A DNA stretch of 64,000 bases from Macrostomum lignano (taxonomy: Eukaryota): the NCBI GenBank assembly GCA_002269645.1, contig NIVC01000866.1, positions 76,441 to 140,440 on the forward strand, read 5' to 3'. A program made the position numbers and the translations under genes. Of this stretch, positions 9,929-64,000 are shown in pieces (the stretch's first letter is position 1; each line of letters opens with the position of its first letter). The notes under the pieces are model-generated. The model was not told where the DNA came from and ran no database searches. It saw nothing but the letters and a program-made list of their open reading frames with translations.

Positions 9929-23661
<13,733 letters not shown>

Positions 23662-36522: not shown

Positions 36523-43664
<7,142 letters not shown>

Positions 43665-43747
43665 GGCTGCCGAGCTTGTGGTTGGTTCGAGTTTGACTTC
43701 GAGTGACCTGCGCGAATTCCGGTTGGCAATGTCGCATTGTAGGAATT

Positions 43748-46700
43748 GAGAGTGACTGCTTTAGAGTGACTGATTGAGAGTGACTGATTGAGAGTGACTG
43801 ATTGAGAGTGACTGACTGAGAGTGACTGATTGAGAGTGACTGATTGAGAGTGACTGATTGAGAGTGACTGACTGAGAGTGACTGATTGAGAGTGACTGAT
43901 TGAGAGTGACTGATTGAGAGTGACTGATTCAGAGTTACTGATTCAGAGTGACTGATTCAGAGTTACTGATTCAGAGTGACTGATTCAGAGTGACTGACTG
44001 AGAGTGACTGATTGAGAGTGATTGATTGAGAGTGGGCTTATTTAGAGTGACTGATTGAGAGTGACTGATTAAGAGTGACTGATTGAGAGTGACTGATTGA
44101 GAGTGACTGATTGAGAGTGACTGATTGAGAGTGACTGATTGAGAGTGACTGATTGAGAGTGACTGATTGAGAGTGACTGATTGAGAGTGACTGATTGAGA
44201 GTGACTGGTTGAGAGTGACTGATTGAGAGTAACTGATTGAGAGTGACTGATTGAGAGTGACTGATTGAGAGTGACTGATTGAGGGTGACTGATTGAGAGT
44301 GACTGATTGAGAGTGACTGATTGAGAGTGACTGATTGAGAGTGACTGGTTGAGAGTGACTGATTGAGAGTGACTGATTGAGAGTGACTGATTGAGGGTGA
44401 CTGATTGAGAGTGACTGATTGAGAGTGACTGATTGAGAGTGACTGATTGAGAGTGACTGATTGAGAGTGACTGATTGAGAGTGACTGATTGAGAGTGACT
44501 GATTGAGAGTGACTGATTGAGAGTGACTGATTGAGAGTGACTGATTGAGAGTGACTGATTGAGAGTGACTGATTGAGAGTGACTGATTGAGAGTGACTGG
44601 TTGAGAGTGACTGATTGAGAGTAACTGGTTGAGAGTGACTGATTGAGAGTGACTGATTGAGAGTGACTGATTGAGAGTGACTGATTGAGAGTGACTGATT
44701 GAGAGTGACTGATTGAGAGTGACTGGTTGAGAGTGACTGATTGAGAGTGACTGGTTGAGAGTGACTGATTGAGAGTAACTGATTGAGAGTGACTGATTGA
44801 GAGTGACTGATTGAGAGTGACTGATTGAGAGTGACTGATTGAGAGTGACTGATTGAGAGTGACTGATTGAGAGTGACTGGTTGAGAGTGACTGATTGAGA
44901 GTGACTGATTGAGAGTGACTGATTGAGGGTGACTGATTGAGAGTGACTGATTGAGAGTGACTGATTGAGAGTGACTGATTGAGAGTGACTGATTGAGAGT
45001 GACTGATTGAGAGTGACTGATTGAGAGTGACTGATTGAGAGTGACTGATTGAGAGTGACTGATTGAGAGTGACTGATTGAGAGTGACTGATTGAGAGTGA
45101 CTGATTGAGAGTGACTGATTGAGAGTGACTGATTGAGAGTGACTGGTTGAGAGTGACTGATTGAGAGTAACTGGTTGAGAGTGACTGATTGAGAGTGACT
45201 GATTGAGAGTGACTGATTGAGAGTGACTGATTGAGAGTGACTGATTGAGAGTGACTGATTGAGAGTGACTGATTGAGAGTGACTGATTGAGAGTGACTGA
45301 TTGAGCAGTGACTGATTGAGAGTGACTGATTGAGAGTGACTGGTTGAGAGTGACTGATTGAGAGTGACTGGTTGAGAGTGACTGATTGAGAGTAACTGAT
45401 TGAGAGTGACTGATTGAGAGTGACTGATTGAGAGTGACTGATTGAGAGTGACTGATTGAGAGTGACTGATTGAGAGTGACTGGTTGAGAGTGACTGATTG
45501 AGAGTGACTGATTGAGAGTGACTGATTGAGGGTGACTGATTGAGAGTGACTGATTGAGAGTGACTGATTGAGAGTGACTGATTGAGAGTGACTGATTGAG
45601 AGTGACTGATTGAGAGTAACTGATTGAGAGTGACTGATTGAGAGTGACTGATTGAGAGTGACTGATTGAGAGTGACTGATTGAGAGTGACTGATTGAGAG
45701 TGACTGATTGAGAGTGACTGATTGAGAGTGACTGATTGAGAGTGACTGGTTGAGAGTGACTGATTGAGAGTGACTGATTGAGAGTGACTGATTGAGGGTG
45801 ACTGATTGAGAGTGACTGATTGAGAGTGACTGATTGAGAGTGACTGATTGAGAGTGACTGATTGAGAGTGACTGATTGAGAGTGACTGATTGAGAGTGAC
45901 TGATTGAGAGTGACTGATTGAGAGTGACTGATTGAGAGTGACTGATTGAGAGTGACTGATTGAGAGTGACTGATTGAGAGTGACTGATTGAGAGTGACTG
46001 ATTGAGAGTGACTGGTTGAGAGTGACTGATTGAGAGTAACTGGTTGAGAGTGACTGATTGAGAGTGACTGATTGAGAGTGACTGATTGAGAGTGACTGAT
46101 TGAGAGTGACTGATTGAGAGTGACTGATTGAGAGTGACTGATTGAGAGTGACTGATTGAGAGTGACTGATTGAGCAGTGACTGATTGAGAGTGACTGATT
46201 GAGAGTGACTGGTTGAGAGTGACTGATTGAGAGTGACTGGTTGAGAGTGACTGATTGAGAGTAACTGATTGAGAGTGACTGATTGAGAGTGACTGATTGA
46301 GAGTGACTGATTGAGAGTGACTGATTGAGAGTGACTGATTGAGAGTGACTGATTGAGAGTGACTGATTGAGAGTGACTGATTGAGAGTGACTGATTGAGG
46401 TGACTGATTGAGAGTGACTGATTGAGAGTGACTGATTGAGAGTGACTGATTGAGAGTGACTGATTGAGAGTGACTGATTGAGAGTGACTGATTGAGAGTG
46501 ACTGATTGAGAGTGACTGATTGAGAGTGACTGATTGAGAGTGACTGATTGAGAGTGACTGATTGAGAGTGACTGATTGAGAGTGACTGATTGAGAGTGAC
46601 TGATTGAGAGTGACTGGTTGAGAGTGACTGATTGAGAGTAACTGATTGAGAGTGACTGATTGAGAGTGACTGATTGAGAGTGACTGATTGAGAGTGACTG

Positions 46701-46790
46701 ATTGAGAGTGACTGATTGAGAGTGACTGATTGAGAGTGACTGATTGAGAGTGACTGATTGAGAGTGACTGATTGAGCAGTGACTGATTGA
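43748..46790. repeat. 3-kb 14-bp satellite (GAGAGTGACTGATT)n
   Basis: Read directly; explains the 952-aa and 913-aa ORFs. Confidence 0.98.
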
Positions 46791-47449
46791 GCAGTCACTA
46801 ACAGTAACAAAATGAAATCCGTAGATCAATAGATTATTATTTATAGCTCAAAAGACGCGTAATTCCTAACGCAGTTAATAAATTTGGCTTCCTGTCAGCC
46901 TTCCGTATCTGCAAGCAGCGCACACAGACTGTATCGTCACTGCTTAGCACACCCACGCAAGACCATCTCCTGTTTCAGTTCTGCTTTGTTCACCGAGCGC
47001 GGCTTCCTTTCGGGAAGATCTTTCACTGCGGAAGGAGCCAAGCACACACACACACACACACACACATCTTCCATCACACACATCTTCCATCACACACACA
47101 TCTTCACTCATTAATCTCCTGTGTCTCTCTGTCTCCTAGACTCCGTCAGTTAGTGTTAAATTCATTCAAAGTAGCAACCTCATGGTGCCTCGCAGTTCAT
47201 TATCTCACATAGTCGACCTCTAGTGCGCCCTCCTGATCGCCAACTCCTTTTTTGGGAGAGCGAATGGGGGCTTGAGATTCTCGCGTACCGGATGGTTGCT
47301 ATGGATATAGGGACAGGTGGCCCTGCCTGTTCTACCTCTGCCTGCGAATCGTTGTCTATCCCACCAAATCTCTCCCTTCTCTCTCCTTCTCCCTGTCTCC
47401 CTCCCTTCTCGACCTGCATTTCCTAATCTTCCATCTTTCAGTCATTTTC

Positions 47450-47750
47450 TCCCTCCTTACCCTCCCTCATCTCTCACCCTCCGTACCCTCCCTCATCTCT
47501 CACCCTCGTTACCCTCCCTCATCTCTCACCCTCCTTACCCTCCCTCATCTCTCACCCTCGTTACCCTCCCTCATCTCTCACCCTCGTTACCCTCCCTCAT
47601 CTCTCCTTCTCCTTACCCTCCCTCATCTCTCACCCTCCTTACCCTCCCTCATCTCTCACCCTCGTTACCCTCCCTCATCTCTCACCCTTCTTACCCTCCC
47701 TCATCTCTCACCCTTCTTACCCTCCCTCATCTCTCACCCTCCTTACCCTC
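47450..47750. repeat. 26-bp pyrimidine-rich minisatellite (CCTCCCTCATCTCTCACCCTCGTTAC)n
   Basis: Read directly. Confidence 0.88.
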
Positions 47751-48103
47751 CATAATTTCTCTGCTCCTTACTCTCCCTTATCTCTCACCCTTCTTCGTCC
47801 TCTTCTTCTCACTCCCTGCCCACCCAGCAGCGCACCTCACACAATCCTCATAAGGCGAGAAGCCAGCAATTCTCGTAACGCCACTCGAAAACTTCTCAAG
47901 CTCTTCCTCATCAGACCAGCATGCGAAATTCGAAACTAAGAATTTGCCCTAGAAACTTGACCCGCGATCATTTAAAGCTTGAAAAGATTTTTCCGTTCAA
48001 ATCATAAATATTTAATGAGATTAAAAATGCCCCCAGGGAAATCCGTGGATCCACTGTCCAGCGGAGAGGCAATGCATCTAGGAGAAGACTGCATTCAACT
48101 CAC

Positions 48104-48299
48104 CTGCACAGGCGGCAATTGTATCCCTAAGTTCGACCCCTTCTTTGGCGAGTACCGGAAGAGCGAAAAAAACTTGAAATTAATGAACGACTCGAATTTA
48201 CCGCAGTCCTCGCGAAGACGTCTCAGGGCGCCTTTTTATTTATGAGGATTTGAGCAGAGCAGGATCCCGGCCAATGAGATTGCTCGGCCAGCTCATTGG
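48104..48299 (-). promoter_or_regulatory. Candidate promoter and non-coding first exon of the AstC-like gene
   Basis: Inverted CCAAT pair (CCAAT 48271-48275; ATTGG 48295-48299), TATA-like TAAATAAA on the minus strand near 48240, then an ATG-free segment ending in a consensus donor CAG|GTGAGT at 48104/48103. An acceptor 43 nt upstream of the precursor ATG (exon start 43707) requires such an exon. Confidence 0.4.
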
Positions 48300-48789
48300 C
48301 TCAGTGGCTCCGTGGCGTGCGGATTTTCAATTAATTTCTACCCATCTCCCCATCCTTGCCTTTGTGTTGCGTCAAAAATTGCGCGGCAATTTCATTTTGT
48401 CTTTTGTGAGGAAGGTTCGGTTGGCTTGAGGTGCTCAAAGAAGCAAAATATTATAGAGCCAGCAATGAGCAATCAGTTTCTGCGTCTGCGTGGGTCATGC
48501 AAAATTCGAGGCTTGAATGCGGAAAATCAATTAAAACATTAACCACATTGTGCCTCTGCCTCTACACATTTGCTTTCGTTGATTTCATCAAGAAAGCCTA
48601 TGATAGTTCAGTACTGGTTCGTCACGAAATTAGTCACAGTATTAACGCCGCCCACGAGTTCGCTTTGAGAAAGAAGCTCTGAGAATCCTGGTCGCAGAGA
48701 GATGACGCTGATTCTTCAGGCCAGGTAGGTACAACTTTGTGAGTGTAAAAACAGCGCTTACTGTGCCGATGCAGTGGTAATGGCTAAAA

Positions 48790-49275
48790 GCGATGCGGAG
48801 TGAGGTGGGTGCTGCGGTGGGGGGTTAAAATGGATACGGAGTGAGGTGGGTGCTGCGGTGGTGGGTTAAAATGGATACGGAGTGGGGTGGGTGCTGAGGT
48901 GGGGGTTAAAAGTGATGTGGAGTGAGGTGGGTGCTGCGGTGGGGGGTTAAAAGCGATGCGGAGTGAGGTGGGTGCTGCGGTGGGGGGTTAAAATGGATAC
49001 GGAGTGAGGTGGGTGCTGCGGTGGGGTTAAAAGCGATGCGGAGTGAAGTGGGTGCTGCGGTGGGGGGTTAAAAGGGATACGGGTGGGGGGTTAAAATAGA
49101 TATGGAGTGAGGTGGGTGCTGCGGTGGGGGGTTAAAATGAATACGGAGTGAGGTGTGTGCTGCGGTGGGGGTTAAAAGCGATGTGGAGTGAGGTGGATGC
49201 TGCGGTGGGGGGTGGGTGAGGTGAGGTGGGTGCTGCGGTGGGGGTTAAAAGCGATGCGGAGTGAGGTGGGTGCTA
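48790..49275. repeat. ~41-bp G-rich minisatellite (GCGATGCGGAGTGAGGTGGGTGCTGCGGTGGGGGGTTAAAA)n
   Basis: Read directly. Confidence 0.92.
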
Positions 49276-49954
49276 CAGTAAAGATTTAGAAGCCATACGA
49301 TTCTGAGGCCCTCCAAAAGTAGTGGAGCAACACAGGAAATTCTGTCGCATGAATTTAGGCAAAACGAGAAAATCTAGTATTAGTGCCAAAGTACTTATTA
49401 TGCTGTTTGCTCTTTGCAAGGCAATGTATTTTCTCAGCCAATATAGACCGCAGATCAGCTTGATCAGGAAAGTAAGCAATTAAATCCATAAGAAATGTCC
49501 AATACTGTCACTAAGTATACTTATAACAGAGGCAAATTAACCAAATAAGTTCTATTGAGCACACAATTCTGAAATATTGTTTCTTGAAATGAACCGGGAG
49601 CCCCTGCTCGCACTGGAGCAGGCAGATAAGCCGGTACCCAGCAGCCTTGGCCCTAATCTAGCGGTGTTCTTCCCCTTCCCAACCTTTCGTGTGTCACTCA
49701 ACGGGAGGCAAATTTTCTGATAAAAACTGAGCGAGCAGGAGCTGAGTAATTGCATTGGGCTACTCCAGCAGCCTCCGCATCGCCCGCATCAAGTATTTAG
49801 CTCAAAATCTGCGAACAGAAAAACTTGCTTCTTTTTCCTGCAATTGCCAATTTATCAACGGCGCGATTAAACTATTCTACTTACAGTAGTAAGATGCAAA
49901 TTTTAGTCAGCTGCCATGTTGAAAAGTGTAATTTAGGGTAAGAAATTCATCTAC

Positions 49955-50820
<866 letters not shown>

Positions 50821-52179
50821 ATCTAGCTTCAACTGATCCGCAGTGCCCAGTCGCCTGTGACCAGGGGCTGTGCAGGCGGCGATCTGTGACCAGACGCCGC
50901 CAACTGCGACCAGTGGCCTGACTGGCGACAAAATTTAATTACTATTTATGGATTAACATCTATTTACTTACACTTATTTATGCAAAGTTCTCAGTGCTCT
51001 GTATTAATTTAATATTTCTTTTTTCTACGGGCGTAAATAACTTATTTGTTAAACTTTTCAAGATGCTTAGTCACACACTTCTATGCTTTAAATCTGGTTT
51101 TCCATAGCACCTGACATCTTTATTTTTGTGCAAGGCTTTAGCTGCAAAACTTTAACCAATCAGCAGCGTGCTTCAACTCGCGTTTTAACTAATTATACGT
51201 ATATATCTTTACTCAACACTGCTCAGTGCACCCCCAAAAGTCGCATAGATATATTGAAATTATGTTACAATAACTTCACAGCCAATATATTTGTTTTTAA
51301 ACCCGAATAAATAAACCCTGACGAAGGCCCAGTCCAGGCCGAAATATCGGTTTTTATACCGAATATTCCACAACTGGTAACCTTCAAAATCTTCCGTGTG
51401 CGTGGTTTGCAGTTTCAAACTGCCTAATTCATAGCTATATCTAAAAGACTGACACTAAAGGTTCCATCGCATAGAGTAATGTCCTTTGGCCTTTTTTTCG
51501 GACAGAAAATGGGAAAAACAAACGCAATGAATAATAAAAAAAGTTTTTTTCTGTCAGCCAAAAGCTGCAAAACAGTCTCAGCTCTCAGAGTTCGCTCACC
51601 AACCCCAAACTTGTCTCACGTTGTTTTGAGAAACTAAACTTGAAAACGTGCCTGTAGAGGAGCCACGAAGATGCCTGATGAATGCGTTGCAGGCAGACCC
51701 AGTAAATTGTGCTCAAGCAATAAAGTTTTTTTCTATTCTTTCATTTCCAGTTAGAGATCACAAAGCATGCAAACAATTTGACAGCGAGGCCAGCAGACAG
51801 AAGCAATTAAAAATAAAACTGAGAATGAGGCGATGCAGCAGGCTTTTCTGCACCGACTCTAACTTAGGGCCTTGAGAGTTCGCAACGAGTGGCGCCATTC
51901 GCGACCCACTCCAGCATCTGCATGGGGTGATGCTGCTCCTTCTCACTGCCAAGTGCGCCAGCCAAGACAGGGTGGCTCCATTATCCTTCTAATTCTGTCT
52001 GAGAGCAGATTTTTTGGATTGAAGGAGTCTGCCGAACTTGAACCTTTTGGTTCCTTTTGTTTCGTTTGATGAAGCTTCATTTCAATTAAGATTATTCCTA
52101 CTAATCCTACTTGTTCCCTTATGAATCAGTTATAAATCCTCTTTCAATACGAGTTATTATCCCATCTCATTCCATTCCG

Positions 52180-52860
52180 AAACTATCTCACCCCATTCCG
52201 AATCTATCTCGACCTCTGTGGGCATTTCTGTGGGCACCTCAACCTATTCGGAATCTATCTCACCTCATCTTGAATCTACCTCACCTCATTCCGAATGTAT
52301 CTCATCCCATTTCGAATCTATCTCATTCCGTTCCAGATCTATCTCACCCCATTCCCAATCTATCTCACCCCATTCCCAATCTATCTCACCCCATTTCGAA
52401 TCTATCTCACCCCATTCCGAATCTATCTCACCCCATTTCGAATCTATCTCGACCCATTTCGAATCTATCTCACCCCATTCTGAATCTATCTCACCCCATT
52501 CCAAATCTACATGTATCTCACCTCATTTCGAATCTATCTCGACCCATTTCGAATCTATCTCACCCCATTCCGAATCTATCTCACCCCATTTCGAATCTAT
52601 CTCGACTTATTCCGAATCTACCTCGACTTATTTCGAATCTATCTCACCCCATTCTGAATCTATCTCACCCTATATTCAGTCTAGCTCACCCCATTCCGAA
52701 TCTATCTCACCTCAGTCCGAATCTATCTCACCCCATTCCGAATCTATCTCACCCCATTCCGAATCTATCTCACCCCATTTCGAATCTATCTCGACTTATT
52801 TCAAATCTATCTCACTCCATTCTGAATCTATCTCACCCTATTTCGAATCTATCTCACTCC
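52180..52860. repeat. 21-bp minisatellite (CCGAATCTATCTCACCCCATT)n
   Basis: Read directly; explains the NLSHPIP ORF. Confidence 0.95.
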
Positions 52861-53371
52861 TTTCCTTGCTATCTCCTCTCATTCGTTTTTGTATCTTATC
52901 TTTATGAAATCCTTCCATACTTGTCAATATTTATTTACAGAAGTTTTGAAACATACCGTACCTTGCTTCCAGCAATATATAATTATTGTCTCCTGCTGTC
53001 ATAAAATTTCATCATCACGCAAACACGTGAGGCCCTATCTGACGCAAAGAACACTGTGCACCCCAGAATTAAATACTTTTGAGCCTCAATACTACAATAG
53101 AAAGGAAAAGAAACTGCTCAATTTGCATTAACTACGAGTACTAGACCAAAGTACGCAGTGTTAATCGCACCCCAATCGTACCCCATACGTATTAATTGTA
53201 TCGTTGTTTGTCAGTGCCCTTGGCACTTTCGTCTCGCTGAGTTTAACACTCACTTGCCCAGCGAGGAATAAAAAGCCGGTTCAATCCGCTTCTTAATCAC
53301 ACTCGGGGGCATTTCGCATGCAGGCGCCTCCCGTGTCGTAGGTCTGCTCAGAAAGCGTGCTCAGAACAGGC

Positions 53372-53378
53372 TATAAAT
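53372..53378 (+). promoter_or_regulatory. TATA box of cationic peptide gene 1
   Basis: TATAAAT 95 nt upstream of the ATG at 53473; Inr-like TCAG about 25 nt downstream. Confidence 0.7.
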
Positions 53379-53472
53379 GGGCCCCAGCTTCACTTCCATT
53401 ATCAGCTGACTGGGAGGTCTGAATCGCCGCTGTTCTCGTTGAATTTCCGCAGCATCAGCAGCATCAATCAGC

Positions 53473-53718
53473 ATGAAGTGGCAGCTGGCCGCTCTTCTGC
53501 TCGCCTGCGTCGCCGTGGCCGTCATGGCGTCGCCGTCGGCCGAGGCCGAGGACTCGGACCTGGCCGAGCTCGCCCAGCTGCAGGAGGCCATGGAGAGCGA
53601 TGAGGTCGAGCACCTGCAGGCTAAAGGCCGCTACAGGCGCTTCAAGCGCAAGCTGAAGCGCGCCTACAAGCGCTATCTGAAGAGGCACGGATACCGGAGG
53701 CACGTGATTTATGGCTGA
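53473..53718 (+). CDS. Secreted cationic peptide precursor 1 (81 aa; putative antimicrobial peptide)
   Basis: Intronless ORF MKWQLAALLLACVAVAVMA|SPSAEAEDSDLAELAQLQEAMESDEVEHLQAK|GRYRRFKRKLKRAYKRYLKRHGYRRHVIYG*. Hydrophobic signal peptide, propiece with 10 D/E, and a 30-aa tail with 9 R + 5 K and no acidic residue. GC3-rich codons; TATA box present. Confidence 0.9.
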   Translation: MKWQLAALLLACVAVAVMASPSAEAEDSDLAELAQLQEAMESDEVEHLQAKGRYRRFKRKLKRAYKRYLKRHGYRRHVIYG

Positions 53719-54534
53719 TTGTGGCCGCCACTGGACTGTCCGCAACGGAACTGATTGTACTGAGTAATACTATATGCTCTCCACAGTATGAAGTACTTTG
53801 TAGAATTATCGATACAAGTATTGCATTTGCAAAATTATCAATACCGAAAAGAGCATGTTTCACCATCGCATGAGCTTGTCGTGTCAATGCAGCTGATTTA
53901 TACAAAAAGAATGGTAATACACGAGCGTACACTTACTTTGCTATTCCTACTCTTATTTTAAGTACAGGTAACTCGTACGGGCTACTCTCAGCAGTTCTTG
54001 TTTTTATTTATTGAATTTGAAGATGGCTTGCACACCGAAAAGGCGAATTCCGTGTCCTAGATTGGATGATCTGGCATGCTAAATCAGAGATTGTGCAAAG
54101 ACTCGACTGTTCTCTTTGATCAAGAGTTCGAATTGATTTTTAGTATGTTTGTATTCAATCGTTCAGAGTCCCTCTGAAATATGATAAACACTTTTACTAT
54201 AGCTTTTGCAGCCCATTAGGGCCTACGTGCGATAAATTTAATTTAATGTAAGACACGGTTGGTAAAGTAATGGAGCTTTTGTCTATGGTAGCAAGGCTGA
54301 CACAGTGGCATTTAATTTGGTCAGCTATTGGTTTGCTGTTAGCATCACATCAAGCTCTGCAATGTTGCTTGAATAAAATTAATATCGTAGGCGTAGGAAC
54401 GTTTCAAAAAGTGGGGGGCCAGGTTCAGTGGCGGATTTAGGGGGGGGGGGGAGGGCGCACGCCCCCCATCGAGTTGGATTTTTTATATGGGAAATGCACA
54501 TTATCATGTACAGATTATTTTCAGAATCGGTGTT

Positions 54535-55830
54535 GTCAGCACTCATTTTAGCGCCGCAGCCACTCATTTTAGCGCCACAAGCATTCATTTTAGCGCCGCA
54601 GGCACTCATTTTAGCGCCACAAGCATTCATTTTAGCGCCACAAGCATTCATTTTAGCGCCGCAGGCACTCATTTTAGCGCCACAGACACTCATTTTAGCG
54701 CCACAAGCATTCATTTTAGCACCGCAGGCACTCATTTTAGCGCTGCAGGCACTCAGTTTAGCACCGCAGCCACTCATTTTAGCGCGGCAGGCACTCATTT
54801 TAGCGCCGCAGCCACTCATTTTAGCGCTGCAGGCACTCAGTTTAGCACCGCAGCCACTCATTTTTGCGCCGCAGGCACTCATTTTAGCGCTGCTGGCAGT
54901 CATTAGCGCCGCAGGCACTCATTTTAGCGCTGCTGGCAGTCATTAGCGCCGCAGGCACTCATTTTAGCGCCGCAGGCACTCATTTTAGCGCGGCAGGCAC
55001 TCAGTTTAGCGCCGCAGCCACTCATTTTAGCGCGGCAGGCACTCATTTTAGCGCCGCAGGCACTCATTTTAGCGCCGCAGGCACTCATTTTAGCGCTGCT
55101 GGCAGTCATTAGCGCCGCAGGCACTCATTTTAGCGCTGCTGGCAGTCATTAGCGCCGCAGGCACTCATTTTAGCGCCGCAGGCACTCATTTTAGCGCTGC
55201 AGGCACTCAGTTTAGCGCCGCAGCCACTCATTTTAGCGCGGCAGGCACTCATTTTAGCGCCGCAGGCACTCATTTTAGCGCTGCTGGCAGTCATTTTAGC
55301 GCTGCAGGCACTCAGTTTAGCGCCGCAGCCACTCATTTTAGCGCGGCAGGCACTCATTTTAGCGCCGCAGGCACTCATTTTAGCGCCGCAGGCACTCATT
55401 TTAGCGCTGCAGGCACTCAGTTTAGCGCCGCAGCCACTCATTTTAGCGCGGCAGGCACTCATTTTAGCGCCGCAGGCACTCATTTTAGCGCCGCAGGCAC
55501 TCATTTTAGCGCTGCAGGCACTCAGTTTAGCGCCGCAGCCACTCATTTTAGCGCGGCAGGCACTCATTTTAGCGCCGCAGGCACTCATTTTAGCGCCGCA
55601 GGCACTCATTTTAGCGCTGCAGGCACTCAGTTTAGCGCCGCAGCCACTCATTTTAGCGCGGCAGGCACTCATTTTAGCGCCGCAGGCACTCATTTTAGCG
55701 CTGCTGGCAGTCATTAGCGCTGCAGGCAGTCATTTTAGCGCCGCAGCCACTCATTTTAGCGCGGCAGTCACTCAGTTTAGCGCTGCTGGCAGTCATTAGC
55801 GCCTCAGGCAGTCATTAGCGCTGCAGGCGA
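54535..55830. repeat. 21-bp minisatellite (CACTCATTTTAGCGCCGCAGG)n
   Basis: Read directly; explains the CGAKMSA/ILAPQAL ORFs. Confidence 0.95.
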
Positions 55831-57296
55831 TATGTGAAAGAGTTCTGCAGTCTCTCAAGAATAAAAGCTCTACTGTTAGGCTCAAGAACTGTTTATTTGA
55901 GTCTGAACCCCCACCCCATTGTGAGCCTGGCACTGGAAAGACCGACTCTTCATTGCCGCTGTCTCAAGGCTAGGTCGCATTGAGCATGCAGACTACCTGA
56001 GGGGCTGAGTATTCTCTTAACCAGCTCACCCAAATTTGGCTTGACTTCTTGGGGCTCTGTTTTGTAGGTAAGCGAAAGCTCCCAGATTTCGGATTTATAG
56101 ATTCGACGAGGTGGAGCTACGAGCTTGATTGTTTGAAACGAGAGAAAGCTGTTAATGAAGTTCTCTCGTTTCAAACCATATGCCTGACGATGCACCTAAC
56201 GTGTGCAAAACGCGTCGTAACAACCTACATGTTGATTTTTGGCTTTCTCTTTAAATATCGAATTCTTCAACGATCATGCATAACTTTTTTGATGAAAAAT
56301 TCCTATTATGACTAGTGGGGTCAAATATTCGAAAAAGATGTTTTTAACGCTTTCACGCTTAACGCTCCGTTTGAATTTAATTGTTCAGTTCAATCATTTA
56401 GGTCTCACCTTGGCCAATGTACAGTGTAGAATGTACATTCACAATAGCTAAGGCGTTTTATGACTCGCAATTTGTGGTGTTGATTGAGTTTTATCGTTTA
56501 CCAGTCTGATAGACGATCGATGAAATAGAGGGGGTTATAAAGCTGCTGGCCTGAAATGCGATGTGTTTGCGGACGAAACAAGCCTTTTTTCACAATCCCC
56601 ATCTTGCTCTGCTCTGCCCATTTGCCACTGCTCTGATTTTGTTTGTGTTATTTTAGAACACAGAGGGTGGCGCAGTTGCAGATGGGGGCAGTTGCTAAAG
56701 GGTTCAATTACTTCAGACTTACTTGGCAAATTTGGAAAATGGTGGGCTTAGTGCGCTAGTCACAATATACTAAATAATTTCCTAAATTAATAAATAGATT
56801 TAAACAATGCGTCAACACTATTTTATAGATCTGATAAATATTTACCAATATTTTTCAAAGGCGACCCGAGTCTGCAATAGAGGAAGCATATATACTCAAC
56901 AACATTAAAAAGTCGCCACCTTTGAAAGTGCGCAGTAAATTCCAGCTCAGTATTGATTTCTGACTCAGTTTTGAGTGACGCAACTTAAGCACGATCGGAA
57001 ACAGAAAAGTGAGAAAGATGCTGAAGTCTGTTACCCTGCTGCTAAATATTTATTTTAACTAAAAGTTAAAAAAGTTAAAAAACAATGCTTAATAATTACG
57101 AGCTAGCTTGCAAACTGCGAACGATGAAATTCCAAGTGTATTTTCTGCCTGGCAGATTCTCAAAGTTCACGATGTTCAACAATCACTTAAGCTGATATTA
57201 TATAGTAAATTTTTTTGTTGATTAAGTGTACATTATCAGTAAAGAAAGATTAGCCATATTGTCCAAGGCGATAATTCAGAAGACGGTCCGCTTCGT

Positions 57297-57596
57297 TTAG
57301 CCATAGAAGTGGTAGCGCCTGCGGAAGAAGCGCCTGCGGATGCGGAAGTAGCGCCTGCGGAAGTTGCGCCTGCGGAAGTAGCGCCTGCGGAAGTAGCGAC
57401 GCCTGCCGAACCGAATCCTAAACTTCTCTTCCGGATCCGCGTCCTCGTCGGATTCGGCCAGATCGGGCTCGGCCATGTCGGCCAGGGCGGAGGCCACCTT
57501 TTCAAAGTCTTCGTCGTCTTCTTTGTGCTCAGCCGGGCTGGCGTAGACCGCCAGCGCCACGCACAGGAGGAGACCGAGAGCGAACTGCCACTTCAT
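57297..57596 (-). CDS. Secreted Arg-rich peptide precursor 2 (99 aa; putative antimicrobial peptide)
   Basis: Intronless ORF from ATG 57596: MKWQFALGLLLCVALAVYA|SPAEHKEDDEDFEKVASALADMAEPDLAESDEDADPEEK|FRIRFGRRRYFRRRYFRRRNFRRRYFRIRRRFFRRRYHFYG*. Propiece has 17 D/E; the tail has 21 Arg in 41 aa. The first 21 residues are 15/21 identical to precursor 1. Confidence 0.92.
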   Translation of the reverse strand: MKWQFALGLLLCVALAVYASPAEHKEDDEDFEKVASALADMAEPDLAESDEDADPEEKFRIRFGRRRYFRRRYFRRRNFRRRYFRIRRRFFRRRYHFYG

Positions 57597-57682
57597 GGCT
57601 GCTGCTGAATTCAGAGAGATTCGCTTTGCAAAGTTGATCCCGTCTTGGGTCTTGGGGGCCGTTTTGAGCTCGAGGTGGTCGA

Positions 57683-57689
57683 ATTTATA
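57683..57689 (-). promoter_or_regulatory. TATA box of cationic peptide gene 2
   Basis: TATAAAT on the minus strand, 87 nt upstream of the ATG; same CTATAAAT context as gene 1. Confidence 0.7.
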
Positions 57690-60080
57690 GACCCGCAAAC
57701 TGGGGCGGGGGCACGTTTTTGCTTACCTGCAAAACAGAAGCCCCAAAAAACGTGCTCTCAAGACTCGATAGGGGGTTGAAATTTGAATGCTTTTGCCTCA
57801 TGGTCCAAATTGCATTCAAAGAAAGAACGAAAGATGCATGCAGTAGCTGCCATTTTAATTTCAGCAACCACATATCTGATATTAATTCTCTCACGGCCCC
57901 TTCTCAACTCAATGCTACCTAGCCTTGAGGCAGCAGTAATTAAAAGCGGCTCTTCAGTGTCAGACTCACAATAGGTGGCCTCAAGAACAGCATAAGCAAG
58001 TCTTGAGCAGTTGAGCTTGAGAGTTGAAGCTGTTATTGTCTGGAAAACTACCGAACTCTACCTACGAGTCTTGTGAGTTCGCTCACACACTTGCAGACTT
58101 GCGTCGCATGGAAGCTTTTTCGGTCCCAGCATATTTTGGCCCATAAATTTTCTGTCAGGTTGACAGAGATCCCGGGACTTTAAAGCTGATTTGTGTCTAT
58201 CTTCCAAGGGAATTTGTTTATCGTCAATTCAGCGAACCCAAAGTTTTGCATGCTGGTATCGGCACGGGCTGTTCTGCCAGGCGTCCTGCACACCGCAGCG
58301 CTGTTGCTGGGGCTATTGATGTCAGAGATGCATTTGCGACAAAGCACTGGCATTATTGGCATATTTAGCATGAGCAGTACCCTCAGGAGTTTGCAGCCTA
58401 AACTTATGCAGCTTTGAAAAGTCAGAGATTCCTTCATGCTGCCACACCTTCACAGACTAAATATCTTGACTACAAAAGACTGTATCATCATCAGATTCGT
58501 ATTACATTCAGTGGTGTAGCAGTTTGAACAACCCAATGAATTCGAATGACATTTCGAAACACTTTTTATGCACACTCGGCAGTTCAAAATTACCTTCAAT
58601 GGTTCACCAAAAATTTAGTGATGGTTCACCAGCAGTTTAGCAATGGCTCACCCACAATTTGGCTACGGTTCACCAACGGTTTAGAAACGGTTTATCAGAA
58701 GTTTAGCAATGGCTCACCAGCTATGGTTTACCAGCACTGTTTCTCACAATCCCTGAGCAGATGGCCACAAATCTCCGAGCAGTTCTACAGTAATCCCATG
58801 GTAGTTTTTCGCCGACCATGCTGAGACCCAAAAAGGTCTAAAAAGGGATATTTCTCAATAAATCGAAACAATTTTAAATGTTTTAAAGATCCTTGCATCA
58901 TTATCTATGTATTTATTGTAAATGTCAGATTAGACTGCTCCCCAGATTTCAAATATTAAGAACTCTGTGAATCCGAGCTATGTTTTCCGTTTGGTTATCT
59001 CATCGTTTCGTCTGGGAACCTGTATCGAACTCAAAGGCAGTTTTATTACGTAACATCTACTCGCTGCAAAGAGATAGATGCAAAATAGGGCTCCGAACAC
59101 TCTCCAATGCTTCATCGCCGAATGATACGATACCACTGAGCTCAAACTCAAAGTACTAAACCCCTCCGACCACTTCCGTGAGGCGATTTCTTATTTAGGT
59201 AAACAATGGGAGGCATTGATGGAGTGGAATCAAATCATTTACATTTCACTTCCAGCAAAAAACAAACAAGATCAAAGTATCATCAAAGTAGTCTGCATCA
59301 GTGAGTTATCCGTGGATTCGCTCCGTGTAAGCGGAGTGAAATAAAGTCAAGTAGTCAGAAGTCTGAACTTTACGAGATTGCGACACGAAAGCCAAAAAAC
59401 AACGTTGCAGGCCGAAAAGCCAGCTTATACTGAAACTTTATCGATATTTTATTATCGATCAGCTGACTCACCCAAACCCCACCCCGCGCTTGCAAAGTAC
59501 ATTCAGCGAGAGTGAGAGACATCAAAACAACCCAACCCAGCACCTGCCACCGGCGCTCACGCATAAAGTAACCACAGCAGTGATGCACGGTCCTCTGGGG
59601 GTTGTTTCACAGTCGTGGGTGCTCTTCACTATTACTTAGGCGTAACTTCTACGAGTTTATTTTGATGCCAACCGAGACTGAGCTTTCTGGGTGGAGATGC
59701 AGTATGAAGTAGGATTGGCCATAGACAAACCTTAATGTGGAAGAAGGTATACATGTATTGAAGTTGCTCTGGCATGTGCCAAGTTCACTTTTCTGATCTT
59801 TCTGTGTTTACTGCCATACCGTCTTTACCGTGAATTGGCTGAAAATATATCGAATATCCATTCAATTCGACTTGAAGCAACTCAAGCAACTCCTTATGTG
59901 CTCTAAAGCTGGGAGCGACATCGGGGCTTTTACTACAGACTAATTTTCTTTCGTGAAATATTTCTAGAGAATGAAAGTTTATTGCTATTTAACTAAAAAC
60001 TTGAGCCTTACCTTACCTTTATAAGTAATCTAACCATATTTGCGACCGACGAATATGCAATAAGTAGTACGAGATACAAG

Positions 60081-60774
60081 CAAGGACGACTTAAGTAGAA
60101 GGACGGGAAACCTCGTTTCTTAGAAAATTTTTTAAGGCAGGTTTTCCCGAAAAAAATACACTACGGAGATAGGAATTTTTCATTTTTTCAGCACAAAAAT
60201 TGCTATTGCTTTTGATAGGAGGCAGATCCAGTGTTCATTTTTTGATATATTGTGCCTTTCTTATTGCTCTATCGATATTCATAAGGCTTTTCGTTCAGAA
60301 AATTTGGATTCTATGTTAATTTTTTATTCTACGTATATTTTCACGCGTCTTGAGCCTGAAATACATTAAATGCCACGGCTCGGCTTTTTGGTTTTATGAG
60401 TCTATTTTATAATTCTTAGCTGACTGTGTAACAAATATTTGTAACAGATGATAAAATAGATTCATAAAACCAAATATTAAAGCTGTGTCATACATTTTTG
60501 TGATTTTTAGATACAGGAAATATACGTAGAATAAAAATTTAACATAGAAATCTAATTTTCTGAACGAAAAGCTTTATAAATATCAATAGAGCTATAAGAA
60601 AGGCACAGCATATCAAAAGATGAACACTGGATCTGCCTCCTATCAAAAGCAATAGCAACTTTTGTGCTGAAAAAATGAAAACTCCTATCTCCGTAGTGTA
60701 TTTTTCAGGAAGACCTGCCTTCTAAAATTTTCTAAGAAACAAGCTTTCCCGTCCTTCTACTTAAGTCGGCCTTG
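60081..60774. mobile_element. 694-bp foldback MITE with CAAGG termini (P-superfamily-like)
   Basis: Ends CAAGGACGACTTAAGTAGAAGGACGGGAAA / TTTCCCGTCCTTCTACTTAAGTCGGCCTTG. Inverted arms are clear for ~260 bp and weaker toward the centre. Perfect 8-bp TSD GATACAAG at 60073-60080 and 60775-60782. Confidence 0.92.
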
Positions 60775-61249
60775 GATACAAGATTCGTAAGTTTCTAATG
60801 CATTTTTACTCACATGCTGAGCAAATATGTGTAGGAAATAGATGGAAAGAAACAATTCGTAACCCGAAGAGTGAAGTCAATTGCTCTTTCACTGCTGCTT
60901 GGCCGCGGTTTTCAATATTGGAGTATACTGAAGCATCATGTTGGAGACGGTGATGCCTGCTTCAACTACATCTACGAGCGTAAGAGTGAATCTGCTTCAG
61001 CACCCACATCTGCGACGACTTAGCGCCAACTGAACACGACTGTTGTGGTTGGAGAAAGACGGGATCAAGTAGTTGATCGGCATGTTTGGTCTAGATTGTC
61101 GCTGGCAATGGTAACTTACAGCTATTTCTATTTGCTTACTTGTATATTATTTACTGGCTATTAAGTAATAACAATATTAATACGCTCGTAATTAATTTCA
61201 TCCGCCCCGATTTAGCCAGATGTAACAGGCTAAATCCGAGGAGGTTTCT

Positions 61250-61830
61250 GAGGAGCGAGTTGGCAGACACCCTCGCCAAAAGGGGCGGCTCTGGCTCTTC
61301 CTAGACCCTGAGCCTCTGGTCCCTATCCCTTCTACGGTCATCAATCGTCAGATCTATGACTGGGCTGATTCCCTTCACAGGGACCCAGAAATGCTGTCAA
61401 TCACGAACCAAAATCGGAAGGACATTCGAGTCTTTGTCATGATTTTTACGGGCCATGGCTAACTCGCCAGACACTGCTTCCTTCGAGGCGACCTCGTGAG
61501 TGAACTTTGCCGTTTTAGCGAGTGCGACAATGAAGATGCTCAGCACTTTGTCTGTCACTGCCCTTTCTTTACCAGAGACCGGCTACGCTACCTCTGGCCA
61601 AACCCGTCTATTGACGAGGTCTGCCAGCCCGACAGCATCCCACGGCTCATCCAGTTCCTCCGGGCGACGAGACGAGCCACTTTCTTCCCTACGGAAGATC
61701 AAAGCTGCAGGAAGGACCGGCGGACCACCCTGACCGGCCCCACGCCTCTGCCTGTCTGCGGGCCTTCGGGGGCTGGCGGAATGGGCGACCCTCGCCTCCC
61801 CGCTGTGTCTACGGACCACCATGCAGCTAA
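61250..61830 (+). mobile_element. 3' fragment of an RNase H-bearing non-LTR retrotransposon (I/Loa/R1-like)
   Basis: ELADTLAKRG (end of RNase H), then DPEPLVPIP..IYDW, then IFTGHG*LARH..LCRFSECDNEDAQHFVCHCP (C-terminal zinc knuckle). Contains a frameshift and an in-frame stop. Confidence 0.8.
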
Positions 61831-62129
61831 GTAAAGTAAGTCAAAGGGCCAGATGTACAAACGACAGCTCAGCCGCAGCTATTGCGCGGCGCATCTGAAG
61901 GCTGCGTACGGCTGTTCAGTCCAAGGACTGGGATTAATTACTAATACTGGCACCCATTTTACAGCTGGGTGAACTGAAGCAATGGAGAGTTAAGTGTCTT
62001 GCTCAAGGACACTAACAAGGAAGTTTTCCTAGTGGTTTTTGGACACTAATTGTTCCAGCTAGATCAGGAATCGAACCCCTGACCTTCAAGTCGTGATTCC
62101 GACGCTCTAAGTACTAGGTTACAACTCCC
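61828..62129 (-). mobile_element. tRNA-derived SINE with a Nin/Deu-like central domain
   Basis: Minus strand: GGGAGTTGTAACCTAGTACTTAGAGCG (A-box-like), GGTTCGATTCC (B box), then GTGTCCTTGAGCAAGACACTTAAC..CACCCAGCTGTAAATGGGTGCC (conserved-domain-like), ending in a CTTACTTTACTTA tail. Confidence 0.75.
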
Positions 62130-63851
62130 TTGCTATTGAGATACACGTCAAAAGATTCATACTCAACCCAACAGATGACATTTTAGCATTGTTATGCATA
62201 TAGTTACGTCTGTACTGGTAATATACGTTGTTTTTTATTTCAAAAAGCATTGTTAGTCGTTTCAGTCGGTCCTAAAGTAGTTGATTTATAATACAACTTG
62301 TATTCGTCTTATAATCTCCTGAGTTATTATAGGGATACCCCTGCGTTAAATTAAGTGGGTTGGTTATGCACGAACACGAAACTTTACTTGGCTGTAGTTT
62401 TGTTGAATTTATTTTAGTTGGTATGAGGAGGTGGTTTCTATTATCAGTTAATGAATTCAAACAATGCATAAACACTCTTTTATAGATCTGATCAATATTC
62501 ACCAGCCATCTGAGAGTCTGCATGGACGACGCAAATAATTAAACATGGCCGAAAAAGGAAGACCTTGAGAGATGCTGAGCACTGGGGGTCTTTCTCGAAA
62601 GCAACTTACGATCGACCATAGACGTAAGTTGGGTAAGCTACACTTACGGGTTGCTCGAAGGGCTCGCAAGTTAGCTATGCGTAAGATTGATCGCAACTTT
62701 ACGAGTTCGTAACTTTGTGCAAAAGACTCATGGATGAATGAATAGAATGGATTGCTATTCTGGCTCTGGCTATTTTCGTTTTTGACTCTTTTGCATCCGG
62801 TTCCCCCCCGTGCCTTTTCATTGGTTGATGATTGCCATAGACAATTTTCGGCCTTCGCCCCTTTCTTTCCTTTTTATTGTAGACGAATCGACTCTCGAAT
62901 CGTGCTTGTAGGTCTTCCCCCTTTATTTCAAAACACGAGCGAAAGAGTAGATATGTATAAGATATTCTATCGGTTTGAGGTCGGTATGAGATTAAATCCC
63001 GAGAGTTGCAACTGGCATATATTTTCTCCAAAACTGGATGAAAATGTCATTCTGCACCATTTTCCAAAGTTTGATACCGCCTCTCAGTTTTGGATCGACG
63101 CATTGAGATCAGAGGCTATAACCTCGGACGTCGTCAGGCAACACAAACTGAAGCTATGAAGCCTACAATTTGAAAGACGCCTACCCCCAATTTTGACGTC
63201 AATTTGCGGTTGCGTTGACGTAGCAAAAATTACCTAACTGACTAACGATTTCGTTGGTAAATTTGTTTTTGCCACAGAAGCGTGCGGCACCGTTTTGCTT
63301 GCGGCAACGCCCCATTTCGTTGCTGCACGCTTTTTTTGTAAAAAAAACAACGAAATCGTTTGGCAATGCAACTCAAGCCTCACTGCAGAATTTTAGTGAT
63401 GAAGCGTTTCTATTCACTGTTTCAATGTGGCTCAGAGCGGTTCGTGGAAAAACACTGGTTTTTTCCTTTCCTGCCATGCAGGTTATAGAGCGGAGAGGGG
63501 TTGGGTGACTGGCTTGTTATATTGTTTGATATGAATATTTCGTGGCATTGGACTGATGGTCCGAACTTGAGATATGTAGACGAACTTGCTTTCAAGTTAT
63601 TAAATTTTACAGTTTTTTAACTTACTACGATCTTGTGTTTTACCCACTTTATAAGTCATAGTCATAATCAATCAAAGCGACCGATAAATATCCGGTATGT
63701 TTTATGAGCTACCAAAGTATGCTCGCATGCTAGAACTATGATTCTTACAATCTAAAAATCACTATATACTAAATCTCTATACCAAAAATTTGATGTTTAT
63801 GTATATATATTTACTAAAGTCTTAATGTTTTTAATGCAAAATAGGCATGTA

Positions 63852-64000
63852 AATCAATCTATGGAACAATCATGGAATCTATCGAATCAATCTATGGAAC
63901 AATCATGGAATCTATCGAATCAATCTATGGAACAATCATGGAATCTATTGAATCAATCTATAGAACAATCATGGAATCTATTGAATCAATCTATAGAACA
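63852..64000. repeat. 33-bp minisatellite (AATCAATCTATGGAACAATCATGGAATCTATCG)n running off the window end
   Basis: Unit starts at 63852 and 63885. Confidence 0.92.

Follow-up and report, generated by a model that had tools for sequence, protein, structure and literature searches.

An arginine-rich prepropeptide of Macrostomum lignano and its clustered gene family as candidate host-defence peptides

The described systems closest to the element considered here are the arminins of Hydra, together with periculin and NDA-1. The element is BOX15_Mlig014430g1, a minus-strand gene of the flatworm Macrostomum lignano. It lies in a 64,000-nucleotide stretch of contig NIVC01000866.1 (assembly GCA_002269645.1, positions 76,441 to 140,440 of the forward strand), referred to as the window. 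The C-terminal Gly of arminin 1a is taken to signal amidation. Like the M. lignano gene, the Hydra genes encode a signal peptide, an anionic N-terminal part, and a cationic C-terminal effector, occur as clustered paralogs, and are restricted to one genus (PMC10945409). The two systems have no sequence homology; profile HMMER searches against 1.84 billion representatives and word-index searches gave no arminin match. Activity has been shown experimentally for arminins and is predicted for the window peptide. The tail of the window protein also differs in that it is the product of a 15-nucleotide repeat, contains 51% Arg and 34% Phe/Tyr, and is non-amphipathic.

A similar layout is found in the preprodermaseptins of frogs and in the cathelicidins. 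These precursors have a conserved signal, an acidic spacer, a basic processing site, and an unalignable mature peptide that falls into several structural classes and often carries a Gly-derived amide. The M. lignano family is not homologous to either and differs from both in that the junction is a single Lys or KK/KKK and not KR, the genes are intronless, and the host is a flatworm. Unlike the cathelicidins, the nine family members scanned contain no cathelin-like pro-domain and no other Pfam family at threshold.

The tail alone can be compared with protamines, PR-39, Bac7, and oligo-Arg, with which it shares an Arg content of at least 50%, Arg runs of three, a very high isoelectric point, and an expected affinity for phosphate and nucleic acids. 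Protamine itself is antibacterial. Protamines, however, are nuclear and specific to sperm, and they carry neither a signal peptide nor a propiece, whereas the window protein has both. PR-39 and Bac7 are Pro-rich, whereas the window peptide lacks Pro and one-third of its residues are aromatic.

The classical lophotrochozoan families of antimicrobial peptides (AMPs) are absent from flatworms, and the AMPs of free-living flatworms are essentially unexplored (PMC10414684; 2025 review, PMC12466427). Both family genes of the window had been flagged computationally. The S5 File of Irvine et al. 2023 (PLoS Pathog, PMC10414684) places BOX15_Mlig014430g1 in fAMP-LP group 129 (SignalP 4.1 positive, AMP-positive in 10 of 11 predictors) and a second gene, BOX15_Mlig026130g3, in group 71 (AMP-like in 10 of 11 tools). 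Groups 129, 71, 116, and 142 were flagged ‘Same genome’, and single-genome groups were removed from that pipeline. The groups were neither merged into one family nor discussed, and the Lys site, mature peptide, repeat origin, clustering, and promoter were not described (PMC10414684). The gene identifiers and peptide strings are not named in the text of the searchable literature; the genes do occur in the S5 File. Already known, then, is the secreted precursor architecture of an acidic propiece and a cationic amidated peptide. New here are the finding that the genes form one clustered, co-regulated Macrostomum family, its conserved Lys junction, the origin of the tail by repeat slippage, and the family-specific promoter.

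The gene and its precursor

The coding sequence of BOX15_Mlig014430g1 occupies 57297..57596 on the minus strand as a single exon of 99 amino acids plus a TAA stop, by direct translation. The ATG is at 57596, the frame is 99 codons long, and the stop codon is at 57299-57297. The full translation of 57596..57297 (minus strand) is MKWQFALGLLLCVALAVYASPAEHKEDDEDFEKVASALADMAEPDLAESDEDADPEEKFRIRFGRRRYFRRRYFRRRNFRRRYFRIRRRFFRRRYHFYG*. A called gene of 99 amino acids, with a 300-nucleotide single-exon model, is present at exactly this position of NIVC01000866.1 in GCA_002269645.1. The part of the window from 47297 to 64000 (16.7 kb) is base-for-base identical to the contig record. The identifier was taken from the S5 File of PMC10414684. 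The deposited M. lignano annotation was built from a genome-guided transcriptome (Wudarski et al. 2017, PMC5730564); the model is transcript-derived, and a transcript is therefore implied. Many of the sister gene models are ‘5’-partial’ with translated untranslated regions, which fits transcript-derived models. Exact proteins were not found in Logan RNA-sequencing contigs, a result that carries no information, since Logan supports none of the M. lignano family members.

A repeat-encoded peptide alone is no evidence of a gene here, because the window is full of meaningless repeat open reading frames (ORFs). A spurious repeat ORF is ruled out by the conserved signal, propiece, and promoter, by the roughly 30 paralogs, and by the annotated transcript model. 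Coding in another frame or strand was also considered. The ORFs at 57309..57608 (plus strand) and 57236..57505 (minus strand) lack a signal, homologs, and start context and are the mere complement of the GC-rich coding sequence. A crustacean or insect origin, suggested by the abundance of repeats and a venom-like propiece, is ruled out by the exact match to M. lignano.

The precursor is composed, in order, of the signal peptide MKWQFALGLLLCVALAVYA, the acidic propiece SPAEHKEDDEDFEKVASALADMAEPDLAESDEDADPEEK, and the tail FRIRFGRRRYFRRRYFRRRNFRRRYFRIRRRFFRRRYHFY-G. The signal peptide (amino acids 1-19) maps to 57540..57596 on the minus strand. It is SignalP 4.1 positive with a predicted cleavage at VYA|SP, and the predicted secreted peptide begins SPAEH (published table, S5 File of PMC10414684). 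The signal peptide residues are identical to those of the paralog P0001 and have one difference from the paralog P0002, directly past the predicted cleavage site; the first 19 amino acids are the same as in both. The acidic propiece (amino acids 20-58, 39 in total) maps to 57423..57539 on the minus strand and contains 17 Asp/Glu and 3 Lys for a net charge of −14. Its closing residue, Lys58 (PEEK|F), is invariant in one family alignment (A5) and at least 90% conserved in another (A2), and this near-invariant Lys is taken as the presumed processing site.

The predicted mature peptide, FRIRFGRRRYFRRRYFRRRNFRRRYFRIRRRFFRRRYHFY, spans amino acids 59-98 (57303..57422, minus strand) and contains 21 Arg for a net charge of +21. 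If amidated, this 40-mer has a monoisotopic mass of 5968.37 Da. The presumed amide donor is Gly99 (57300..57302, minus strand), which stands directly before the stop codon and has a counterpart in most paralogs; the terminal Gly suggests that the tail is amidated. Counted with this Gly, the tail (F59-G99) is 41 amino acids long and is composed of 21 Arg, 9 Phe, 5 Tyr, 2 Ile, 2 Gly, 1 Asn, and 1 His. It contains no Asp, Glu, or Cys. The Phe/Tyr share given above refers to the 41 amino acids and becomes 35% for the 40-mer. The tail starts with K|FRIRF-G-RRR, a canonical amidation and cleavage unit, and has six RRR runs in all. ProP predicts no cleavage site in BOX15_Mlig014430g1 and does predict sites in close paralogs (S5 File of PMC10414684).

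The hydrophobic moment of the tail is 0.23 at 100 degrees and 0.40 at 160-180 degrees, with a peak at 66 degrees that mirrors the 5-residue repeat. AlphaFold2 models the tail as one long helix with a predicted local distance difference test score (pLDDT) of about 90. AlphaFold2 is prone to over-predicting helices in low-complexity repeats of this kind. The helix is not relied on, since the underlying alignment, at 16 sequences, is shallow and its tails are unalignable.

An Arg-rich secreted precursor gene is confirmed at this locus. A preliminary description, made from the letters of the DNA, had reported 21 Arg in 41 amino acids of Arg/aromatic tail with no acidic residues or Cys, preceded by 17 Asp/Glu and a secretion signal. 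Translation and composition counts bear out the tail and the propiece, and the signal agrees with the SignalP 4.1 result and with the conservation of the prepro region in paralogs. A small error lies in its coordinates, 57297-57419 (translating to RIRFG...HFYG*), which run through the stop codon and leave out the first Phe codon (57420-57422). The acidic propiece and Arg/aromatic tail were correctly recognized there, but the gene family, the second copy, the 15-nucleotide repeat, and the FRIRF-G-RRR unit were not mentioned.

The family, its promoter, and the origin of the tail

BOX15_Mlig014430g1 is one of approximately 30 clustered, intronless genes for small predicted secreted prepropeptides, almost all of them from M. 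lignano. Two M. lignano paralogs (P0001 and P0002) were found by word-index searches. Approximately 25 further proteins were found by the HMMER profile search (1.84 billion representatives) and a wider profile search, in which the only matches outside M. lignano were one Logan contig and one unrelated bacterial-looking metagenome protein. The group is defined here as the ‘MKWQ’ prepropeptide family and takes in fAMP-LP groups 71, 116, 129, and 142. No relatives of the family exist among PDB sequences, and Rfam and tRNA scans returned nothing.

The family signal peptide reads MK[WLY]Q[FLI]ALGLLLC..., with M1, L10, and K2/Q4 conserved across 12-16 members. Behind it come an acidic propiece and a cationic tail, with a near-invariant Lys (K, KK, or KKK) at the junction of the two; the last codon before the stop encodes Gly in most members. 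BOX15_Mlig014430g1 has every feature used to define the family: the signal, the order of acidic propiece, Lys, and cationic tail, the intronless gene, the promoter, and the location in a tandem cluster.

At least five family loci are present on NIVC01000866.1, and other contigs have dense arrays, such as the five genes within 20 kb at locus L008. The second family gene of the window, BOX15_Mlig026130g3, is located at 53473..53718 on the plus strand and encodes 81 amino acids; it is supported by a tblastn match (E=2.5e-11), an ORF, and a called gene. Processing is predicted to yield GRYRRFKRKLKRAYKRYLKRHGYRRHVIY-amide. This gene and BOX15_Mlig014430g1 are convergent, and a 21-nucleotide minisatellite (54539-55828) lies between the two.

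Three more loci are found on the same contig just beyond the window. These are P0001, a pseudogene-like fragment, and a member of 148 amino acids. The pseudogene-like fragment (L002 13731-13922, approximately 0.8 kb past the right end of the window) reads ...EKFRIRFRFRKHRYFRRRSQF and ...AEPDLAESELAESDENTDLQEKFRIRFRFRKHRYFRRRSQF and lacks the signal and the terminal Gly. The 148-amino-acid member (L002 719-1165, approximately 20 kb past the right end) has a tail of 78 amino acids made up almost wholly of (RRYY)n. This tail contains 42 Arg and 28 Tyr, has a net charge of +42, and is the most extreme seen. A (TAC)n microsatellite of approximately 85 copies is located inside the gene cluster (L001 401-655, approximately 3 kb past the right end). 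Its tblastn match to the (RRYY)n tail is spurious, as it encodes poly-Tyr in one frame and is a microsatellite only.

The sole family member outside the M. lignano assembly is encoded on Logan contig SRR31628392_42504 (L006, 929 nucleotides). It is a Pro/Arg-rich form, FLRVRLPRVRMPRVRLPRVRLPRLRVRFRWSKK, and carries the same promoter motif. A 92-amino-acid metagenome protein from JGI (P0010) gave a weak profile match; it has a signal resembling those of the twin-arginine translocation (Tat) pathway and an Arg/Tyr/Trp tail, WGWRRRRYRRFYRRRYRWGRRYLRRRYRWGW. P0010 is probably not homologous, its tail having probably arisen by convergence.

The promoter of BOX15_Mlig014430g1 can be aligned with those of its paralogs. 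A TATA box, TATAAAT, is read directly at 57683..57689 on the minus strand, 93 nucleotides upstream of the ATG. An upstream element, AAAAACGTG, with the core RCGTG, is located at 57712..57720 (minus strand), 22 nucleotides upstream of the TATA box. The counterparts of the TATA box are GCGGGTCTATAAAT in P0001 and P0002 and GCATAAAT in the short-peptide subfamily, whose promoters have a full CACGTG E-box abutting CCAAT. In BOX15_Mlig026130g3, the RCGTG and TATA composite is AAAGCGTG-N12-TATAAAT at 53352..53378 on the plus strand. Written as RCGTG-N8-30-[CT]ATAAAT, the composite is found 85-110 nucleotides upstream of the ATG in most family genes examined; it is unmatched upstream of P0002, the 148-amino-acid member, and one gene at a locus edge. 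No site was found away from family genes in 225 kb of window and loci (L002 and L006-L012 among them), and shuffling gives an expectation of 0.02 matches in the window. A family-specific promoter common to the members argues for co-regulation. Downstream of BOX15_Mlig014430g1, a candidate poly(A) signal, AATAAA, is read directly at 57049..57054 (minus strand), approximately 243 nucleotides past the stop.

The tail of the window protein was generated by tandem duplication of a 15-nucleotide unit. Tandem Repeats Finder and the codon layout identify an imperfect repeat of 5.4 copies at 57312..57398, reported without a strand assignment. On the coding strand, the unit is TTC CGC AGG CGC TAC and encodes F-R-R-R-Y. 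Its Arg triplet, CGC-AGG-CGC, is also present in P0001. Tail lengths in the family change in steps of 15, 12, or 6 nucleotides, and all repeat units are multiples of 3 nucleotides. The genome copy of P0001 (L002 10001-10318) encodes 105 amino acids and corresponds to BOX15_Mlig008283g1, and a second model at the same place, BOX15_Mlig025063g1, encodes 96 amino acids without a 27-nucleotide repeat block. This difference suggests that copies or alleles vary in repeat number, or else that one model contains a spurious intron. Slippage of the 15-nucleotide coding repeat is proposed to be still remodelling the tail sequence. Such slippage is one route by which the family diversifies its effector ends behind a constant prepro ‘delivery cassette’.

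Rates of change differ along the precursor. Between the window gene, P0001, and P0002, the signal peptide has a nonsynonymous divergence (dN) of 0-0.02 and a synonymous divergence (dS) of 0.15 and is nearly frozen, silent sites included. The propiece has a dS of 0.5-0.67 and a dN/dS of 0.45-0.74, and is relaxed yet keeps its acidity. Recent duplicates of the short-peptide subfamily differ at 1-8% of sites in the prepro region versus 4-58% in the mature region. In these duplicates, the flanking non-coding DNA has diverged more than the prepro region, and the mature segment changes at about the rate of the 3’ flank. The near-twin of the window gene, BOX15_Mlig017551g1, is also 99 amino acids in length; residues 1-77 are identical and 8 substitutions fall in the last 22. 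Counted by region, the two genes have 0 of 58 differences in the prepro region and 8 of 41 in the tail (Fisher p=5.6e-4). AMP and toxin families are marked by a constant delivery cassette joined to effector ends that are hypervariable, a pattern also seen in reproductive proteins.

The tails of the paralogs are unalignable and span known classes of linear cationic AMPs. The predicted mature peptides range from 6 to 78 residues with charges of up to +42. The amphipathic helix class includes WRRRRRFRWRKAIRVAGKVAKAVL and the product of the second window gene, GRYRRFKRKLKRAYKRYLKRHGYRRHVIY. The Trp/Arg-rich class is exemplified by WFVRWRRRRWRFRFFR, followed by the terminal Gly, and the Pro/Arg-rich class by FLRVRLPRVRMPRVRLPRVRLPRLRVRFRWSKK. 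One form, WRIKSACKIFRRLLHLARKCYAKK, has two Cys. Alternating peptides of 6-10 residues include IFRVRVRI, FVRVRVRL, WLRVRARVRI, and FIHIHF. The Arg/aromatic repeat class contains the window gene, P0001, and the (RRYY)n member. Members with a KK or KKK junction encode strictly alternating hydrophobic/Arg peptides with no internal dibasic pair, whereas members with a single Lys are full of poly-Arg runs. This contrast suggests that two processing regimes may exist in the family.

Host defence and the competing explanations

The balance tips slightly toward BOX15_Mlig014430g1 encoding a lineage-restricted host-defence (AMP-like) prepropeptide. The preliminary description had linked the tail to Arg-rich AMPs and cell-penetrating peptides, a link that gains support from the tail classes of the paralogs and from the AMP-like score in 10 of 11 tools. 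The product is small and predicted to be secreted, its tail is net cationic with aromatic residues, and an anionic propiece precedes it; release of the tail would be the remaining step. An amphipathic structure, also typical of cationic AMPs, is absent from the window tail and present in several paralogs.

A sequence of events consistent with this reading can be proposed. The strongly conserved signal peptide would direct the precursor into the secretory pathway. The acidic propiece (−14) would keep the polycationic tail soluble, harmless, and chaperoned during synthesis and storage; sequence and family evidence agree on these two steps. A cut after Lys58, in the P-E-E-K context, would then free the tail. 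Glu at P2-P4 before this Lys recalls the ‘processing quadruplet motif’ of spiders. Conversion of Gly99 to an amide would yield an Arg/Phe/Tyr peptide of approximately 6 kDa with a charge of +21. As an intact extracellular polycation, this peptide could bind anionic microbial surfaces and phosphates through its Arg guanidinium groups. Its aromatic side chains could aid membrane insertion or crossing, possibly giving access to intracellular polyanions in the manner of protamine, PR-39, and Bac7-type peptides. Nucleic-acid binding, cell penetration, and coacervation of the tail, as put forward in the preliminary description, are conceivable from its composition.

Several observations weigh against a host-defence role. 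The tail is non-amphipathic as an alpha-helix and is far more Arg-rich than typical AMPs. Arg-rich AMPs without amphipathicity exist, so the case for an AMP is lowered and not excluded. The six RRR runs are possible prohormone convertase targets, and cutting at them would destroy the long peptide; the contrast between the poly-Arg runs of single-Lys members and the uninterrupted peptides of the KK/KKK subfamily adds to this concern. The score in 10 of 11 tools was computed on the 80-amino-acid propiece plus tail and not on the tail alone, and AMP predictors largely reward cationic charge. Literature searches yielded no assay or localisation data for the family, and no expression-site data were found in the supplements of M. 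lignano studies. The charge matching of propiece and tail proposed in the preliminary description holds loosely in this gene (−14 vs. +21) but is not conserved in the family, where propieces of approximately −14 are joined to tails of +8 to +42. Mature regions diverge at about the flank rate, as under relaxed constraint. A conserved signal with rapid evolution behind it is also typical of reproductive proteins and toxins, and a tail length set by repeats, together with an Arg plus Tyr/Phe ‘sticker’ composition, would also suit a material or condensate role.

The RRR runs bear most directly on a neuropeptide or hormone-type precursor, in which a convertase would cut at each run and a carboxypeptidase would trim the Arg to leave FRIRF-amide, YHFY-amide, and the spacers YF, NF, and FF. 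With K|FRIRF-G-RRR, the tail opens on a textbook cleavage and amidation unit; cutting at all basic runs would give FRIRFG, YF, YF, NF, YFRI, FF, and YHFYG. FRIRF-amide is an RFamide resembling flatworm FMRFamide-like peptides (FLPs) such as YIRFamide. It shares the -IRF-amide ending of YIRFamide, GYIRFamide, and RYIRFamide, and its RF-Gly unit has basic flanks. A C-terminal amidation Gly is typical of the class, the near-twin BOX15_Mlig017551g1 keeps FRIRFG, and some short paralogs would end in RF-amide (e.g., IFRVHVRF-G and FVRVHVRF-G). FLP precursors, however, usually have several conserved copies, whereas the window precursor has a single non-conserved unit and no further Gly-flanked units. 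FRIRF-G is not present in P0001 (LFFRRRRRR), P0002 (WFSRWF), the second window gene, or the 148-amino-acid paralog, and the nearby pseudogene-like copy reads FRIRFRFRK without the Gly. C-termini in the family vary freely (HI, RL, RI, RF, HF, FY, IY, YH, and YY amides), whereas neuropeptide families conserve theirs. The family has a single peptide per precursor and many divergent gene copies, repeat expansion multiplies the ‘spacer’ dipeptides only, and ProP finds no convertase site in the window protein. A neuropeptide precursor is considered quite unlikely because the FRIRF-G unit is not conserved in paralogs. Composition bears instead on a structural or material peptide, in which the Arg/aromatic block, cleaved or still joined to the acidic block, would condense by cation-pi and electrostatic interactions. 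This could take place in secretory granules or after release, as part of rhabdites or mucus, adhesive or cohesive secretions, or tanned egg or stylet material; such a role is unlikely. Arg with Tyr/Phe is the strongest known ‘sticker’ composition of condensates, acidic and basic blocks are present within one chain, and a repeat number that sets tail length, up to the 78-amino-acid (RRYY)n, resembles a low-complexity material more than a tuned AMP. The short paralogs alternate hydrophobic and cationic residues with a beta-strand hydrophobic moment of 1.1-1.45, a pattern known to self-assemble. Mussel foot protein 3 likewise comprises small secreted Arg and aromatic variants, to which the (RRYY)n tail is compositionally close, but it is Gly/Asn-rich, depends on 3,4-dihydroxyphenylalanine (DOPA), and lacks an acidic propiece and amidation signal. 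The window tail is Phe-dominated (9 Phe vs. 5 Tyr) and hence a poor DOPA/quinone substrate, and it has no Gly/Ser/Asn-rich spacer, unlike known adhesive proteins. Many members, moreover, are amidated peptides of 6-10 residues or classical amphipathic helices, which are better explained as bioactive peptides. A related and rather improbable form of this explanation is that the protein stays uncut at Lys58, or is cut and re-paired with its propiece, and would be secreted or stored as an acid-base diblock polyampholyte (−14/+21) that self-condenses in granules. The granules would dissolve or reorganise in high-salt seawater, and the family would on this reading be a set of repeat-tunable condensate or self-assembling materials for mucus, rhabdites, or adhesive and not one of classical AMPs, with microsatellite slippage setting the length of the tail.

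The evolutionary pattern bears on two further explanations. One is a reproductive peptide, associated with seminal fluid or eggs, or a toxin directed at other individuals or prey, with tail evolution driven by sexual conflict or an arms race between animals. Hypervariability of the mature part behind a conserved signal, tandem clustering, and restriction to one taxon are also hallmarks of seminal-fluid proteins and venom peptides. Reproduction genes of M. lignano are known to evolve fast (PMC7336406). Family identifiers, however, do not occur in the searchable supplementary tables of the M. lignano reproduction-gene study. The composition suits anti-microbial polycations better, and venomous predation is not known from M. 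lignano. This explanation is regarded as very doubtful. The other is neutral drift, in which the tail would be a by-product of microsatellite expansion in a decaying, transcribed member with no selected function. The genome is repeat-prone, with 39% of the window made up of tandem repeat, and a pseudogene-like fragment of the same subfamily lies approximately 7 kb away. The repeat copy number differs between the annotated copies of P0001 (96 vs. 105 amino acids), and the flank-like rate of change in mature regions would fit as well. Decay is nevertheless difficult to reconcile with a reading frame, acid-free tail, terminal Gly-stop, signal, propiece, and promoter that are all intact. The near-twin keeps its 99 amino acids and its composition despite 8 substitutions, and the repeat units all preserve the frame. 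Drift is regarded as highly unlikely.

A family of approximately 30 clustered, co-regulated genes has all of the genomic hallmarks of an effector arsenal. If active, the peptides would be the first linear host-defence peptide family from a free-living flatworm, and the question is directly testable because RNA interference and transgenesis are available in M. lignano. The locus is a concrete case of coding microsatellite slippage making effector sequences (FRRRY, RRYY) behind a fixed cassette. Peptides of 6-78 residues with charges of up to +42 are also unusual scaffolds for antimicrobial, cell-penetration, and condensate work.

Remainder of the window

The tandem repeats of the window are arranged in 45 arrays and give rise to many long spurious ORFs on both strands. 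Prominent arrays include a 12-nucleotide unit in approximately 298 copies (18377-21932), a 14-nucleotide unit in approximately 217 copies (43745-46791), and a GA-rich array (41575-43338).

Two long non-repeat ORFs are present, and neither has a Pfam match. The first (9929-12046, minus strand) encodes 705 amino acids and lies in a block of 68% GC. The second (30388-31887, plus strand) encodes 499 amino acids and is Pro-rich with an acidic C-terminal part. Both are probably exons of real genes. A weak fragment resembling the helix-turn-helix domain of P-element transposase, with an E value (2.6e-4) just below the Pfam cut-off, is located at 13284-13895 on the plus strand. A WD40-repeat fragment is located at 2693-3277 on the plus strand (E=1.6e-6).

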